Positions 39,160 to 62,505 of a stretch of DNA of 64,000 nucleotides are shown here, one piece after another. Position numbers and translations under genes: made by a program. Numbering within the stretch: position 1 is the first letter of the stretch; every line of letters begins with the position of its first letter. Origin of the DNA: Heteronotia binoei (Eukaryota); contig NC_083227.1 of the NCBI RefSeq assembly GCF_032191835.1, positions 40,424,001-40,488,000 on the forward strand. The letters are read 5' to 3'. The notes under the pieces were generated by a model. The model was given only the letters and a program-made list of their open reading frames with translations. It ran no database searches and was not told the DNA's origin.

Positions 39160-41485
39160 GTAAGTTGGGAGCTTGCAGGTCAACCAAAACCAAGACCACT
39201 GCTGTTTTCTGAACCAAAGCATGCCCCTGTTGTCCATGGTAGAATGCGGATAAGGTTTGCCCTTCTTCTGACCCCCTTGTGCCTGTGGATGTTCACTTAT
39301 CACCAAGCCAGTTGGTCTTCAGAATGGCCAGAGTGTTGCAATGTGAACGGGGAGGTCCAGGTTCGCATCCCCACTGTTTGCTCCCTGCTGCTCTGTGTTG
39401 CTTAAAGAAAAGCTACTGTTTCATTCTAGATAGGGTTAATTTAACATGCGTGAAAATATATGCTCTCACTAGTTTTCTATGTAGGGGTTCTGGAAATTCT
39501 TAATATGATTGAGAGAAAATCCTTGTTAGAATTTATGTAATAAATAAAATCCCATTTATAACCTGGTGTCCAAGGTCTTTTTCTGTAAGTGTTATTAAGA
39601 TTCAAAAGATCCCTCTATGTTTTCTATGTTTGTTTATATAAAATAAAATATATTACTAAAAAGATCCCTCTTACAAAACAGATTTAGCCTGGAAATAACA
39701 CAGGTTAACACCTGCCCAAGAGAACAATTATTTATCCCCTTGACATAAGCTTACTGGATGGAAATGAGCAGGTAAAGCTTTTCATGGTACGGAGGTCAAC
39801 AACATTACATGAAGTCTCTACTGAAATGACATGACATTATTCTCCAGGCCTTCAAGCAACTGGGACACTTCTCCCCGAACTATAATCCTAATAACTGATT
39901 CCATTCTGTTTAACCCTGTCCTCTGCCTTAAAAGGTACACACATGAGACCCAAACCAACACACAGTCCTTTGAGGAAGGCAAAGCAGAGGCTGCCCCAGG
40001 GTTACTGGTGTGCTGTTGCCAGTGATCAGACTACACACAAACAACCAGATTCCTATATGCACATACAATCAATTGGATTGGGGCTATGAACTGTATCTCA
40101 AGTTTCACCCACCCACACCATTTGAACACATGATAAAAGAAGCAGAAACTTAACTTTTACGAGTTGCATTTATTCTCTCAAGTTTTTCTCCAAAAAAACT
40201 AAATCTTGAAGACTCTTTTTAATCAAAAATAGTTCAAAAGGAGCTCTGTGATGCCAAAAAGAACTCAGACACACACATACGCACATAGCTGGCACAGCTG
40301 AAGCCCCAGTGGTTCCAGGAGTGGGAGAGCAGAAGGATTCAACTGCAAACAAGTGAAATTATTGAAAATAAGTCACCTAAACCTCAGGGTAGGGTGAAGG
40401 TGAGGGCAGCCATGGACTCCCATCTGCAAAGCTTTACAGTGAACTTCTGAGGTTACATTCATTCCAGCAGCCATGGCCATCCACAGCTGCATCTAAGCAG
40501 AAGAGTCTGTCCAGCTAGGACTTGCCATTGGCTGAAATAATGTGTACATCACACACTGATACCAGCTATAAATCCAATCTAAGCAGAAGAGGGAAACAGC
40601 AGCAAGGAAAGGAAAACAGACAGCTGGGACATTATCTCAACTCACACACAGCAGTGGGATGGGACTGATAGCCACTTCTCTTTAAAAATGTATGATGGTA
40701 GTAAAAATAAGGATAAGTTAGCCTGTGTTTAGTGAAGAGGAAAAAGACACTGGAGCAGTTAGAGTGGGAAAAACCACCCTGGATCCAGAAACCAGGCACA
40801 ATGATTCTCTAAAAGCTGTATTTAAAATGTAGACCAACATTTTAGGTGGTTCCTCGACACTTGGTGGTGTCCTGACAGAACAAGGTCAAATCCATGCTGG
40901 GAAAGCAGTTCTAAGAATATGCTGATAGCAGGCATATAACCAGGGCACCAAAAGTTAGGGATTGCAAGAAATCTAAGATCTGAATGGGTTTAGAATGGGT
41001 GGAAAACAGTAGTCCCAAGGCTTTTTCTTGCTGTGGCAGATTCCCATTCTCCGAATAAAATGGAGAATTACCTGCTGCCAGATAAGGCTCAATTCACAAG
41101 CCTTCTCCAGAGGAAAAGGGGGGAGGGTAATCAAGGATACAGAGATCTTGGAAGAAAGACCCAGCAAGTAAAGCTGTCTGCTCACAGCAGAACCCCAAAA
41201 GGCAAAGAAAGAGGTTTTTGCAAGGACAGATCTGAGCCACAACCAGATCTCTAAAGGAGTGGGGGGGGGGGGGGGGGAATCAGATCAGGGACGTAGTAGC
41301 TCTTTAGAAGAACTGAGATGAGTCCTTGCCAGATTGGATTCACATCAGGATAGGAATCCACCAAACTCTAAGGGTGGAAAGGAGCATGAATCTTGTACCA
41401 GGGATGAACAAAGAGGACTGGAGAGTTTTGTACTTAGGGTGGGGACAGCATCCAGTTATATGTAACGGCAGCAGCAATGGCACCA

Positions 41486-44400
41486 TCAATTGCAAAGTTT
41501 GATGCAGGGCCCCTTGGAGAGGACGCAAAAGAAAGGGAAAATGCGCTCATGGAAAGAAACATTGAAAGTGTGGATGTGGGTCATGCTCTCGGCATTGTAG
41601 AAGCTCAGCTGGCCCCGCTCATAGTCCAGGTAGACACAAAAGCGCCGGAGCTTCTCCGATGGAGAGAGGGACGTTTCCTCAGTGGCCGTCAGGGCCTGGT
41701 ATTTCTTCCCATTAGTCCCCACGCACCAGATCTCCCGCTTCAGGTGGGGTCCTCTGCTGGACTTCTCTTTGCGTCTGGCCATTTTGCGGGTCACCCCCAC
41801 GGCCCAACCCCACCCACCACTCACCTCCACTTCCCAACAGTGGCGGCCCCAGGTGAAACCCTTCAAAGCCAGCACGCAATAGTCTGAGTTGAAGCGTTTG
41901 GAGGTGTTGGGCACATCTCGCCAATGCTCCCCGAGTTGGACACTGTGGCAGTCTGAGGAAAGGGTGAGGCTTGGATGTGCTGTCTCTGGGTCCAGGGTCA
42001 AGTCAACTGTACATAAGGGACACAGAGGGAAAGAACACATAAGCAGGAGGTGCAACCTTCATCCCTGGAACAGCTAAACATCAGCCAAGTTTGGAATTTC
42101 TTTACACTTATCTCCTGTTCTATCCAAAATGGAGTGGGGCAAGTGACATTATTTCTACTTTAATACAAGGATAGAACTGCATCTCCAGGGGGTATGCTGA
42201 CAGGAGTTTACAACCTCTCAAAATTCGGATCATCTCAGTTCTTTTCAATTAATGTATTTCTAGCTCTGAGAAAAGTCTGGAAAATATTAGTGTAGTTGTG
42301 GAAGTATTAGTATACTTTCAGAAGACTGAGATAGAATATAACAAGCAGGAGTGGAATCTATAGCAAACAGATTAACTATAGCTTGGGGAGGGATGGTGGC
42401 TCAGTGGTAGAGCATCTGCTTGGGAAACAGAAGGTCCCAGGTTCAATCCCCGACATCTCCAAAAAAGGGTCCAGGCAAATAGGTGTGAAAAACCTCAGCT
42501 TGAGACCCTGGAGAGCTGCTGCCAGTCTGAGAAGACAATACTGACTTTGATAGACCAAAGGTCTGATTCAGTATAAGGCAGATTCATATGTTCATAGCAA
42601 ACCTGTAGCTTTTGAAACCCTTATCTAGACCACCTTTGTATTTGCTACCACTGAGCAGCGGCTGCCTATCAGTTTTCACACATCCGCTAAGCTACCCACA
42701 CTTGAGGTCTAGAAGCATTTTCAAAGAGGTGGAAGGGATGAAAATTGACACAGCATTCTGAAGACCATACATAAGCCTCTCATTCATACTACCATTGCCA
42801 TAGAGCTTTAGAGTGCTCAACATGTGTTATATAAACTGTGACAGGCCTTTCTAAAAACACTTCAATGTCAGTAAGTATTTAATCACTCACACTCTGTAGC
42901 TGTGGGGCTGAGCCTTCATGAAACACAGCTACCTAGTGAATTTCTGGCCCAGCAATGCTGCACACATTTAGAAGCAGCAAAGTCCACATCCCTTGAAAGA
43001 ACTGTCTCTCCAGGACAACAGCAAGGACTATATTCTCCCCTAGGAACATACCAACTCTTTAAGATCTTCTGTGGAGGGCCTACTACATATTCCCTCACCA
43101 TCTGAGAAACACTGGGGTGCTATATGGGCCATGGCTCACTTACCAGTAGCACTGCAGCCTATGGTAGTTCTGCATCAGGCATTTATTTGCAGGGCCACAT
43201 CCATGTTATCTTCCACGAGCTACTTTATTCCTAAAGGTGTTTGTCATTCAATACATATCCTTGGTAGTGATTCTTACACCAGGCAGAGATTCTTGTGTTA
43301 ATTAGTTTTGTTAATTTTCGTTGGTTGCTTTAAAAATGCATTATAATTTTAAATTCTGTGTTATCTCTGATCCACCTTGACATTTCTCTGACACACACAC
43401 ACAAAGTCATGAGAAACACCACAACAAACATGACTCTTCCATTACCGTATAGCTGGCAGCCCGAAAGCAAGGGGAAAAGAGCTAGTTTGTCCCCTACCTT
43501 GAGGGACTTTGCAGAAGACTTTCTCCATCTTCCTCATCAAGGTGTCTAGAAGGAAATAGTTCTGATATTTCTTTCCTGTGTCCACTGGCACCCTCTCAGG
43601 ATCCTGAAATTTTATGTTCTCACACCTGGTAGAATGATCATATGAGATTTAGATATAAGGTACATACATGGTAATCAGCAGCTAAAGCATGGAGTCGGCG
43701 GGGAGGGTGAGTCAATGAGAACTCAGTTCTTGGTACCCCGTTCATTCCTGACCTGCCCCCCCCCCTTTATTTTAACACAACTGCACAATAGTCAACCAAG
43801 AATGAACAAAGAACAATGAGATTCAAGAAAGGAAATGAAAGAAAAAAATAGGATTGTTGAAAATGTTTGGTGGGTAGCATTTCAAGATATAATTCCCCCA
43901 CACGCACACATACACTTTGGCCTGTTTTTCTTCGGTTTGTAGATTGAAAATGTCCTGGTTGTTGTACCATGCCAGTCACATGAAATGAAGCAGCAGACTG
44001 TTTCTTGGCAGCAAAACAAAACTATAGACCAGATTTAAAGTGCAGTTTAGAATCCTAATTTGTAGACAAGTAACAAACTGCAATTTGCTGAATATGGATC
44101 AACAAAAGAACTGCAATGGGTTCTAAACCAGGAACAATTTAACCTCTGTGTAAAAGACGTTTTCCAACATTCTGAAGTACTAGATTTCTTGCTACCAACT
44201 GAATTTATTTATTTATTTAATTCCATTTATATCCTGCCCTCCTCACCAAATTCAGATGTCCACTAAAACAAAAGACTGTAGAAAACCACAGAATCCCAAA
44301 GAGAAGGGACATCGTATCCACTTAGGCCACATGTGGAGCACAAGCCAACCAGAAATTTACAGTAGGGACAGCATTGGAGAAGGGGGACACAACTAACCTG

Positions 44401-61447: not shown

Positions 61448-61716
61448 AGAACCAGTTTGGTGTAGCGGTTAAAAGTACATGGATTTTAATCCGGGAGACC
61501 CAGGTTTGATTCCCCACTCCTCCACTTGCAGCTGCTGGACTGGCCATGGGTTAGCCATAGCTATGGCAGTTGTCCTTGGGAGAGCAGCTGCTGTGAGAGC
61601 CCTCTCAGCCCCACCCACCTCACAGGGTGTCTGTTGTGGGGGAAGAAGATACAGATTGTAAGCCGCTCTGAGTCTGATTCAGAGAGAAGGGCGGGGTATA
61701 AATCTGCAGTCGTCTT
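61448..61716 (+). mobile_element. tRNA-derived squamate SINE, specific to the right duplication arm
   Basis: Same family as 22854-23135; absent at the homologous position (~39945) in the left arm. Confidence 0.8.
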
Positions 61717-62505
61717 ATGTGTGTAACTTTTAAGGCAGAGGAAAGGGTTAAATAGAATGGAACCAGTTACCAGGTGTGACAGTTGAAGGAGAGGTGTCCC
61801 AGTTGCTGGCTGGCCTGGGGAATAAATAATGTATCCTTTCAAGAGAGGCTTCATGCAGTGTTGTTTACCGCCATACTATGAAAAGCTTTACTTGCTCACT
61901 TCCGTACAGTAAGCCTGTTAAGGAGATATTTTCCTCTTGGCCAGGTCACAAGCATGATGTCCAAAAAGGCTGGATAAGCATTCTGTTTGGGGAATGCTTT
62001 ACTTTGGATTGTATCGATTGAGTGGGGAGCTAGATTGTAAGACAGCAAAGCCCAGTCAGTTCAGACTGATGGTATGTATTTGAGGGGGCCTGTAGGATTT
62101 CCTGCATGGATTTTATGTTGGTTCTGGCACCATAATGCTTCTGTTTATCCCTTGACACCTGCAAGCATTTTTGTGCATTTGCTTCAACCCCTTCCTGTGG
62201 TGTGGGGAGGGGGTTCCTGGTTCTTTTGAGACTTTTACCTTGGTCTTTTTTCTGGAAGCCAATTTTGAGTCACCTTTGCCCTCATGGCTATCATTTTTGT
62301 CAGGTGTTTTCTCCTGCCCGCTTTGATGGGGACTTCCAGACTCTCCCCTTTCCTGCTTCAAACCAGTGCCTTTTCCCTCATATCTCTGCAAGGAAAAAGA
62401 CTAGAGACTTGCTTTTTTTAAAATGAGAGGTGGTGATACAGAAAACCTGTCATTACAGTGGTCTATCTATAGTGCCTTTTTCGCAAAATACACTCATATT
62501 TATAT

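Follow-up and report, generated by a model that had tools for sequence, protein, structure and literature searches.

TRIM41 is usually regarded as a conserved single-copy ligase, and the only offshoot known to us is TRIM52, a truncated, fast-evolving gene of placental mammals. Large palindromes whose arms exchange sequence by gene conversion occur on primate sex chromosomes. A 2013 survey found TRIM41 to be single-copy in anole, birds and marsupials, described TRIM52 as a partial TRIM41 duplicate of eutherians, and noted that a greatly expanded acidic loop 2 within the RING is exclusive to these two genes (Malfavon-Borja et al. 2013, PMC3845644). In squamates, the harbiTRIM locus is a TRIM/PRY-SPRY cluster in which duplication is coupled with gene conversion or recombination; TRIM41 appears in that study only as a nucleoprotein-targeting ligase (PMC12262214).

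The locus described here resembles each of these systems in part. The window, the whole 64-kb stretch of Heteronotia binoei DNA that was analysed, contains a genuine palindrome, formed by inverted duplication of the TRIM41 side of the TRIM41-RACK1 neighbourhood, in which copy A is probably functional and diverging and the two arms probably convert one another.

The TRIM41 pair and its arms

The inverted-pair search of the window returns 20 colinear pairs that match ~40.9–50.1 kb to 51.1–60.5 kb, and gapped BLAST pushes the arm ends out to the limits listed below. The inverted, head-to-head duplication proposed in the preliminary description is thereby borne out. Homology continues to the left of its bound of 39670, where 37541–39376 matches the interior of RACK1. 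The arms, genes and arm-specific insertions, in window coordinates, are as follows.

39710..50321, minus strand: arm A, distal (away from intact RACK1), carrying the TRIM41-like copy A
50322..50871, no strand assigned: unique central spacer, 550 bp
50872..61946, plus strand: arm B, proximal, carrying TRIM41 copy B; intact RACK1 lies tail-to-tail beyond the window
41486..49969, minus strand: copy A, ATG to stop, TRIM41-like, 647 aa, RefSeq XP_060095233.1
49969-49025, 47613-47518, 46564-46334, 44420-44398, 43625-43498, 42006-41486, minus strand: exons of copy A
51246..59826, plus strand: copy B, ATG to stop, TRIM41, 647 aa, RefSeq XP_060095232.1
51246-52190, 53591-53686, 55075-55305, 57611-57633, 57934-58061, 59306-59826, plus strand: exons of copy B
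42383..42596, plus strand: SINE-like insertion with a tRNA-like head, unique to copy A (intron 5), no counterpart in arm B
56690..56992, no strand assigned: ~300-bp insertion in arm B only (intron 3)
54575-54889: second insertion confined to arm B

The SINE-like insertion displays very high RNA depth. The spacer is homologous to the region upstream of the single-copy TRIM41 of Sphaerodactylus and to the spacer of Gekko kuhli.

Exon limits were set by open reading frames, by tblastn searches that used TRIM41 of turtles and birds, and by splice motifs. The exons of the window were searched singly, full-length comparisons were run on the exactly matching database proteins, and human TRIM41 entries among the matches were left out of the analysis. 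Both copies consist of exons of 945/96/231/23/128/521 bp with AG/GT at all introns and zero in-frame stops, and each coding sequence comprises 1944 nt, or 647 codons and a stop. The mirror-image six-exon genes of equal exon sizes, their open 647-aa frames and the 1277 bp between their ATGs (49969 and 51246) are all confirmed as first reported. Every exon translation is residue-for-residue that of XP_060095233.1 (A) or XP_060095232.1 (B), and both genes sit on the 173-Mb record CM063329.1; the existence of the gene pair is thus already public through RefSeq annotation. RefSeq names the two genes only, and the palindrome, conversion tract, RACK1 remnant and asymmetric evolution are absent from the annotation; a full-text literature search found no paper describing the H. 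binoei TRIM41 pair. What is new is therefore the evolutionary pattern rather than the pair itself, for example that, of the 32 residues at which the two proteins differ, 28 changed in the distal copy A.

The identity of both genes as TRIM41 is supported by several lines of evidence. First, Pfam places a RING and a B-box in exon 1, a weak TRIM_CC in exon 3, and PRY and SPRY in exon 6 of both copies, giving the RING–B-box2–coiled coil–PRY/SPRY architecture, and the zinc ligands of RING and B-box2 are retained in both. Second, the Pfam RING match in exon 1 ends at model position 34 of 42, and the exon-1 translations contain an acidic loop of >150 mostly acidic residues between the post-histidine CxxC and the last RING CxxC. 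Third, the best matches in protein searches are all named TRIM41, TRIM41-like or TRIM52, and both copies nest within gecko TRIM41 in a tree whose outgroup rows are the TRIM41 of tuatara, turtle and alligator. Fourth, a 317-aa WD40 gene, RACK1, lies on the opposite strand 4.5 kb beyond the copy B stop, and RACK1 is likewise tail-to-tail downstream of TRIM41 in Sphaerodactylus, Paroedura, Rhineura and Elgaria. Judged by sequence, both copies are true members of the TRIM41 orthologue group, and copy B, beside intact RACK1, is the conserved orthologue.

Both copies are transcribed and correctly spliced. The paralogue-specific RNA check suggested earlier recovers both forms from three studies, with A-specific transcripts among them: spliced RNA contigs that match copy A exactly run across exons 3-4-5, introns are empty of RNA, and three exon joints fall at the predicted boundaries. 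Of the 30 variant letters listed from RNA reads, from a table with 88 further rows, 26 are the exact copy-B letters. Transcript levels of A and B are comparable in two runs, and A accounts for ~20–35% of TRIM41 reads in two others.

Probable exchange between the arms, and the origin of the pair

Three further features bear on the history of the palindrome.

49120..50135, minus strand: arm-A half of an identical 1016-bp tract, zero arm-arm differences
51080..52095, plus strand: arm-B half of the same tract
37541..39376, no strand assigned: remnant of RACK1 sequence, outermost in arm A, ~74–77% identical to the interior of the functional B-side RACK1

Overall, the Heteronotia arms differ by ~14% divergence and 67 indel events, and their identity climbs toward the axis, from ~75% in the RACK1-derived outer part (d~0.24) through ~85% in the gene body (d~0.18) to 100% over the inner 1016 bp. 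This tract spans 166 bp upstream of the ATG and codons 1–283, which include the RING with its acidic loop, and its identity extends over synonymous and non-coding upstream sites; between A and B, exon 1 has 0.5 synonymous differences per 202 synonymous sites and exons 2–6 have a dS of 0.18. Paroedura likewise has a high-identity block over exon 1, within an arm mosaic of 95/77–87/95%. Arm identity within a species (Heteronotia 85%, Paroedura 92%, Gekko 99.9%) also exceeds the 78–81% between genera, the pattern of a shared structure that evolves in concert. The Heteronotia gradient and the Paroedura mosaic indicate active conversion between the arms, strongest near the axis. Because the innermost 1016 bp do not differ, and these comprise the proximal promoter, RING and acidic loop, the two genes have a catalytic N-terminus in common and differ in B-box, coiled coil and SPRY. 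Between the Gekko arms identity reaches 99.9%, but for the RACK1 piece immediately outside them only 83%, so arm identity there cannot date the duplication.

Copy number in other geckos, which the preliminary description had proposed to check, places the event more widely. Paroedura picta and Gekko kuhli likewise have a head-to-head pair adjoining RACK1, with the proximal copy next to it, and thus the event is either gekkonid-wide and old, or recurrent. The Gekko layout was read across a scaffold gap via a redundant contig; that assembly is gap-ridden at the locus, and its redundant third copy is a false duplication by the artefact test. Sphaerodactylus has one TRIM41 copy at the locus. The expansion had been called lineage-specific, a term that holds at best in part, given the pairs of Paroedura picta and Gekko kuhli. 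TRIM41 had also been taken as typically single-copy, which agrees with the surveyed anole, birds and marsupials but not with Rhineura floridana and Elgaria multicarinata, where TRIM41 duplicates are tandem (direct).

On balance, we infer a single origin of the palindrome that predates the divergence of Heteronotia, Gekko and Paroedura, followed by concerted evolution through gene conversion. A less favoured reading, though one with a substantial share of the probability, is that inverted TRIM41 duplications arose in parallel in the three genera with little or no long-range concerted evolution, in which case arm divergence would date each event. Parallel events agree with the coalescence of paralogues within species in every part tested: the Heteronotia/Paroedura quartet has 819 sites that pair the copies of each species, versus 8 and 9 for the alternatives, and the protein tree, the indel patterns and even the RACK1 remnant agree. 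Site and indel patterns yielded no orthologous paralogue pairs (HbA-Pp2, HbB-Pp1) and no paralogue-specific substitutions or indels common to genera, so that the case for a single origin is one of architecture. The outer arm ends also differ among the genera: the Heteronotia end lies within RACK1, the Gekko end ~3.9 kb and the Paroedura end ~1.4 kb beyond the stop. Squamate TRIM41 is evidently prone to duplication, as the Rhineura and Elgaria tandems attest. However, independent origins would require three events with the same orientation, on the same side and with inner ends, 374, 448 and 469 bp before the ATG in the three genera, that fall within ~100 bp of one another. They would also require RACK1 sequence to have been included in at least two of them, since the distal arm holds RACK1 pieces in two genera. 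Moreover, the Gekko boundary between 83% and 99.9% identity deprives arm identity of its value as a date, and the Heteronotia gradient and Paroedura mosaic point to the very conversion that parallel origins would largely do without.

Two candidate markers of the pair's history were set aside. Spacer polarity was rejected as a marker of common origin, as the spacer is colinear with the distal copy in Gekko and with the proximal copy in Heteronotia. The RACK1 remnant, tried as a clock free of conversion by which to date the duplication, was dropped: its tree is nearly star-like and the remnant pairs with Heteronotia RACK1 (98% support, short stem 0.024), so it does not decide between the two origins. 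The functional RACK1 that the remnant matches lies past the right end of the window; arm A lacks ~4.4 kb in which the RACK1 3’ exons lie, and the neighbour of copy A is this remnant only, not a full RACK1. A tRNA-Val(CAC) landmark upstream of the locus in Sphaerodactylus and Paroedura was not found in the 64-kb window, and tblastn with an H1-like protein, aimed at the mirrored side beyond the window, gave no match at the other loci searched.

Constraint and asymmetry

Polarised changes in exons 2–6 number 14 synonymous and 22 non-synonymous in A, and 13 and 2 in B (Fisher p=0.002), with an omega of 0.43 on the A side, significantly below 1 (p=0.014), against 0.04 on the B side. The changes in copy A are located in the B-box, coiled coil and PRY-SPRY, and many of its derived amino acids occupy sites invariant in 8 other squamate sequences. 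Over the 999 bp of exons 2–6 there are 0 indels versus 11.5 expected from the intron rate, about 5–6 of which should have fallen to copy A, and copy A retains all 10 of its splice sites. These patterns indicate that both copies are constrained, that protein change is approximately ten times faster in A, and that B is conserved; the copies are not equivalent. The earlier view that both were retained intact is upheld by the lack of stops, the spliced transcripts, the indel-free exons 2–6 and the omega values below 1. Copy A is probably a functional, diverging paralogue rather than a dying gene, because its reading frame is kept and its omega is below 1 despite nearly all of the protein changes having fallen on it. 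It may have shifted its substrate or partner range, and its omega is compatible with relaxed constraint equally as with adaptive change.

It is unlikely that copy A is instead redundant and heading to a pseudogene, with its excess changes reflecting relaxed constraint and B-to-A conversion keeping exon 1 fresh. Its omega is indeed ten times that of B, its changes hit squamate-invariant sites that include the B-box and the SPRY C-terminus, and the adjacent duplicated RACK1 did decay. However, its omega is significantly below 1, and it has zero stops, zero indels in exons 2–6, 10/10 intact splice sites, and spliced transcripts at B-like levels in two runs. A functional copy A leads to a broader and speculative proposal, to which we give little weight, that the palindrome acts as a modular diversifier. 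Conversion near the axis would keep promoter, RING and acidic loop identical while the distal B-box, coiled coil and PRY-SPRY change under selection, yielding a further E3 ligase with an unchanged catalytic end but new targets or partners (e.g. a viral nucleoprotein), and the pair might on that account have persisted in gekkonid geckos over tens of millions of years.

That a lone TRIM41 locus was misassembled, by false inverted duplication or by a mis-join, is highly improbable: the perfectly identical 1016-bp inverted block at the axis is an error-prone spot for assemblers, but the window has no gaps (no N runs were found across its 64 kb), and, as the preliminary description expected from the copy-specific insertions, these insertions, the divergence and indels of the arms, the recovery of both paralogue sequences from the RNA of three studies, and the matching layout of an independent chromosome-level Paroedura assembly and of Gekko kuhli all speak against it.

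Comparison with known systems

Geckos carry a full-length second TRIM41 that is expressed, constrained and changing ten times faster than its twin, with a catalytic end apparently matched by conversion. Such a pair offers a clean test, set up by nature, of where specificity resides in a TRIM protein. It also provides a view of palindrome dynamics on a compact, autosomal scale, with an identity gradient toward the axis, spacer flipping and passenger-gene decay. Like the primate palindromes, the gecko pair has inverted arms, a short spacer, arms more alike within a species than orthologues are, and a structure conserved across species. Unlike them, it is possibly autosomal, much smaller (arms of about 11–17 kb) and, in Heteronotia, far less homogenised (~85%).

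Duplication of the TRIM41-RACK1 junction is a recurrent event in squamates. Rhineura and Elgaria also have an extra TRIM41 next to RACK1 with paralogues that cluster by species, and in Rhineura a RACK1 fragment is duplicated too; their duplicates are direct, whereas the gecko pair is inverted, and one Elgaria copy, placed on a long branch, shows no recognisable PRY-SPRY. The harbiTRIM locus is likewise a squamate TRIM duplication with gene conversion, but of another TRIM clade, at another locus and near a Harbinger-derived gene (PMC12262214). A further parallel is TRIM52, which, like gecko copy A, is a fast-evolving TRIM41 duplicate with an expanded acidic RING loop beside a constrained parent (PMC3845644). 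TRIM52, however, lost its coiled coil and SPRY at birth and evolves fast in the RING loop (PMC3845644), whereas copy A is full-length and has this region apparently kept identical to B by conversion.

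Structure of the palindrome and identity of its two genes

An inverted-repeat search of the window yields 20 colinear inverted pairs, matching ~40.9–50.1 kb to ~51.1–60.5 kb, and when one side is compared by gapped BLAST with the reverse-complemented other side, the arms lengthen to 39710–50321 (arm A, containing the distal, minus-strand TRIM41-like gene, copy A) and 50872–61946 (arm B, containing the proximal, plus-strand TRIM41 gene, copy B). The window contains no runs of N. The duplicated segment is longer than the preliminary description had placed it, reaching leftward to at least 37541 and rightward to ~3.7 kb past the window end, inside RACK1; arm A lacks a 4.4-kb piece with the 3' exons of RACK1. 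Identity between the arms is uneven, at 72–90% in the introns and ~98% between 48902–50135 and 51080–52312, and over 1016 bp (49120–50135 and 51080–52095) the two arms are exactly 100% alike.

Features of the palindrome (window positions)
37541–39376: RACK1 remnant, 74–77% identical to the real RACK1
42383–42596: private SINE-like element of arm A, 212 bp, with a tRNA-like head, in intron 5 of copy A only
43680–44107: private insertion of arm A, ~430 bp
50322–50871: unique centre between the arms
54575–54889: private insertion of arm B, ~310 bp
56690–56992: private insertion of arm B, ~300 bp

Exon limits were drawn from the ORF list, tblastn with turtle and bird TRIM41, and reading of the splice junctions; frames were checked exon by exon, and full-length analyses ran on database proteins. 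Each copy has six exons of 945, 96, 231, 23, 128 and 521 nt, with AG/GT at all five introns, no in-frame stops, sense codons at both intron-spanning positions, and a coding length of 647 codons plus stop. The ATGs lie at 49969 (minus strand) and 51246 (plus strand), 1277 bp apart. These mirror-image genes, with their identical exon sizes, 647-aa open frames and ATG spacing, are exactly as first described, and a head-to-head duplication with two intact genes is confirmed by the arm alignment, open frames and splice sites. XP_060095232.1 (TRIM41) contains every exon translation of copy B, and XP_060095233.1 (TRIM41-like) every one of copy A; both are Heteronotia binoei proteins, and thus the pair, on CM063329.1 of GCA_032191835.1 at ~40.42–40.49 Mb, is already publicly annotated.

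Pfam places RING and B-box2 domains in exon 1, a TRIM coiled coil in exon 3, and PRY and SPRY in exon 6. In both copies the RING is split by a very long acidic loop, a feature unique to TRIM41 and TRIM52 (Malfavon-Borja et al., PMC3845644), and the best matches of both are all named TRIM41, TRIM41-like or TRIM52. A maximum-likelihood tree places both within gecko TRIM41, inside a squamate clade that excludes tuatara, turtle and alligator TRIM41. RACK1, a 317-aa WD40 gene, lies tail-to-tail 4.5 kb beyond copy B, and is also tail-to-tail with TRIM41 in Sphaerodactylus, Paroedura, Rhineura and Elgaria. Among solved structures, the SPRY domains of TRIM7 and butyrophilins come closest; none of the 60 structure matches listed is named TRIM41.

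Expression and divergence of the two copies

Two raw RNA runs and two run-contig sets were aligned to exons 3–6 of copy A (41300–46600) at 90% likeness. Depth falls on the copy A exons and 3' UTR and is zero in the introns, repeats excepted, and joints at 42006>43498, ~43625>44398 and ~44420>46334 are GT..AG on the minus strand, at the delimited exon boundaries. Exons 6 and 3 are covered by contigs that match copy A without a difference, one of which spans exons 3, 4 and 5; further contigs differ from copy A at 5, 12 or 15 positions. In the raw reads, the letter is exactly that of copy B at 26 of the 30 tabulated variant positions (88 further rows lie beyond those tabulated). Since contigs identical to copy A and reads with copy B letters both occur, both paralogues are transcribed and spliced, in runs of three studies. 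Copy A accounts for ~20–35% of reads at two-letter sites in the two raw RNA runs, and its k-mer depth is at least that of copy B in the two contig sets. A mis-join of a single copy, named as the refuting possibility in the preliminary description, is contradicted by the divergence between the arms (14–15%, and 67 indel events in the 4.9 kb aligned outside the axis) and by the presence of both forms in RNA of three studies.

Several other properties of the reads were observed. Run X1, recorded as DNA, has spliced contigs and empty introns and behaves as cDNA or transcriptome. At exon 6 sites 41510 and 41528, all reads of both raw RNA runs have the copy B letter, while at 41519, 9 bp away, they are mostly of copy A type; the reference letters at 41510 and 41528 are retained in contigs from another study. 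This pattern points to differences among the individuals or lineages that make up the species complex, caused either by polymorphism or by micro-conversion between the two copies. The SINE-like repeat at 42383–42596, called a tRNA by Rfam and 'tRNA-Pro ggg' by ARAGORN, has family members at 23811–23883 and 45902–46078, RNA depth that exceeds exon depth by factors of hundreds to thousands, and many chimeric joints between family members.

In exons 2–6, copies A and B differ with dS of 0.18 and dN/dS of 0.20. Exon 1 contains six differences, 5.5 of them non-synonymous, all in its final 60 nt (B-box), just outside the identical tract. Differences were polarised with Gekko, Paroedura and Sphaerodactylus.

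Changes assigned to each copy
Copy A branch: 14 synonymous, 22 non-synonymous, omega 0.43 (below 1, p=0.014)
Copy B branch: 13 synonymous, 2 non-synonymous, omega 0.04
Location of copy A changes at otherwise invariant positions: B-box 294, 295 and 304; coiled coil; PRY 487–510; cluster at 546–550; C-terminus 624–642

The branches are asymmetric (Fisher p=0.002), with 28 of 32 amino-acid differences derived in copy A (many of them hitting residues that do not vary among eight other squamate sequences) and tree branch lengths of 0 for copy B and 0.053 for copy A. No small indels occur in 999 bp of exons 2–6, against 11.5 predicted from intron density. Given this and an omega below 1, copy A diverges fast but remains under purifying selection. 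The proteins of the Paroedura pair differ at only 7 sites, without asymmetry.

Distribution and origin of the inverted arrangement

Paroedura picta has two head-to-head TRIM41-like genes, the proximal one tail-to-tail with RACK1; its arms are a mosaic of ~95%, 77–87% and 95% identity, with an exon 1 block at 97.8%. Gekko kuhli also has a head-to-head pair, its arms matching at 99.9% identity. In Sphaerodactylus townsendi there is a single copy, and the 10 kb upstream contain no further TRIM41-like sequence. The duplicates of Rhineura and Elgaria are tandem and directly oriented; in Rhineura floridana the duplicated unit is TRIM41 plus RACK1 (locus L002, 4993–8938; locus L010, 26268–29904), ~21 kb apart. 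With duplicates in several lineages and the inverted pair in three gekkonid genera, squamates have duplicated TRIM41 repeatedly, and Heteronotia is not the only genus with the inverted form. The original proposal of an inverted duplication with both copies retained holds, but its narrow 'lineage-specific' scope does not, as P. picta and G. kuhli share the layout, and the copies are not equivalent.

Additional features accompany these loci. On G. kuhli CM122940.1, three genes at ~114.37 and ~115.24–115.27 Mb encode an identical 643-aa TRIM41. The third copy, 0.86 Mb from the pair, adjoins RACK1; its 99.9% identity to the palindrome starts and stops exactly at 100-N gaps (one at locus L007, 8508–8607), a palindrome arm has a matching gap (locus L006, 19632–19731), and the records carry the UNVERIFIED_CONTAM flag. 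This copy is probably a redundant, mis-scaffolded contig. The extra RACK1 of Rhineura is called as a 106-aa WD40 fragment, identical to full RACK1 over the 148 bp compared. The upstream tandem gene of Elgaria multicarinata (locus L003, 1–6315; 662 aa) has RING and B-box, no recognisable PRY-SPRY, and a very long branch (0.49); a third TRIM41-like model of 456 aa lies on the same chromosome. A tRNA-Val(CAC) gene and its flanks match at 97.7% identity over 87 bp between Sphaerodactylus (locus L004, 4738–4810), 5.2 kb upstream of the single TRIM41, and Paroedura (locus L001, 23975–24047), 4 kb beyond the distal copy; it is a landmark of the ancestral upstream region, and was not found within the window. 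An intronless gene for an H1-like basic protein (26041–26982, 313 aa) lies distal to copy A, as does a counterpart to the distal Paroedura copy (locus L001, 26085–26702, 205 aa). The two proteins are too diverged for a tblastn match, and the genes are oppositely oriented relative to TRIM41 despite colinear flanking blocks; the protein collection searched has no entry for the Heteronotia protein.

In the Heteronotia/Paroedura quartet, 819 sites group the paralogues by species, against 8 and 9 for the alternatives, as do 93 shared indels, against 4 and 15; the protein tree groups them likewise. The pair probably has one origin, as an old palindrome that formed once and whose arms would then have been kept alike by gene conversion. 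Several observations favour this reading. First, side and orientation are the same in three genera, and the inner arm ends lie 374, 448 and 469 bp upstream of the ATG. Second, the spacers share homology with one another, and also with the region upstream of the single-copy TRIM41 in Sphaerodactylus. Third, RACK1-derived pieces occur in the distal arm of both Heteronotia and Gekko. The Gekko piece (282 bp, 83% identical) lies directly outside the 99.9%-identical arms, so arm identity in Gekko cannot date the duplication. In Heteronotia, identity climbs toward the axis, from d ~0.24 in the outer RACK1 part (stem only 0.024), through ~0.18 in the gene body (stem 0.074), to 0 in the inner 1016 bp. 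Parallel inverted duplications in separate gecko lineages are possible, if somewhat doubtful given the shared placement of the arms; consistent with them, no paralogue-specific characters common to the genera were found, the outer arm ends differ between genera, and Heteronotia RACK1 and the remnant still group together (98% support). The spacer is colinear with the distal copy in Gekko and with the proximal copy in Heteronotia, which cuts across both readings; it would have to reflect either an assembly error or a crossover between the arms that flipped the spacer.

Comparison with known systems

On primate sex chromosomes, conversion between the arms is well known to keep the two halves of a palindrome alike. 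For another squamate TRIM locus, harbiTRIM, a 2025 preprint that mentions TRIM41 only in passing describes duplication accompanied by gene conversion (PMC12262214). Searching full texts for TRIM41 together with gecko, squamate, lizard or reptile turned up no paper on the gecko pair. The gene pair itself was already annotated; what the present analysis adds is evidence that both copies are expressed, a tenfold asymmetry in how fast the proteins evolve, the conversion gradient and the architecture shared among gekkonids. According to a 2013 survey (PMC3845644), anole, birds and marsupials each have one TRIM41-like gene, and the eutherian TRIM52 arose by duplication of TRIM41; this duplicate is truncated and evolves fast, while TRIM41 itself is constrained. 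The gecko pair likewise combines a constrained parent with a fast daughter; unlike TRIM52, however, the gecko daughter keeps its full length, with a RING loop that stays identical to the parental one.
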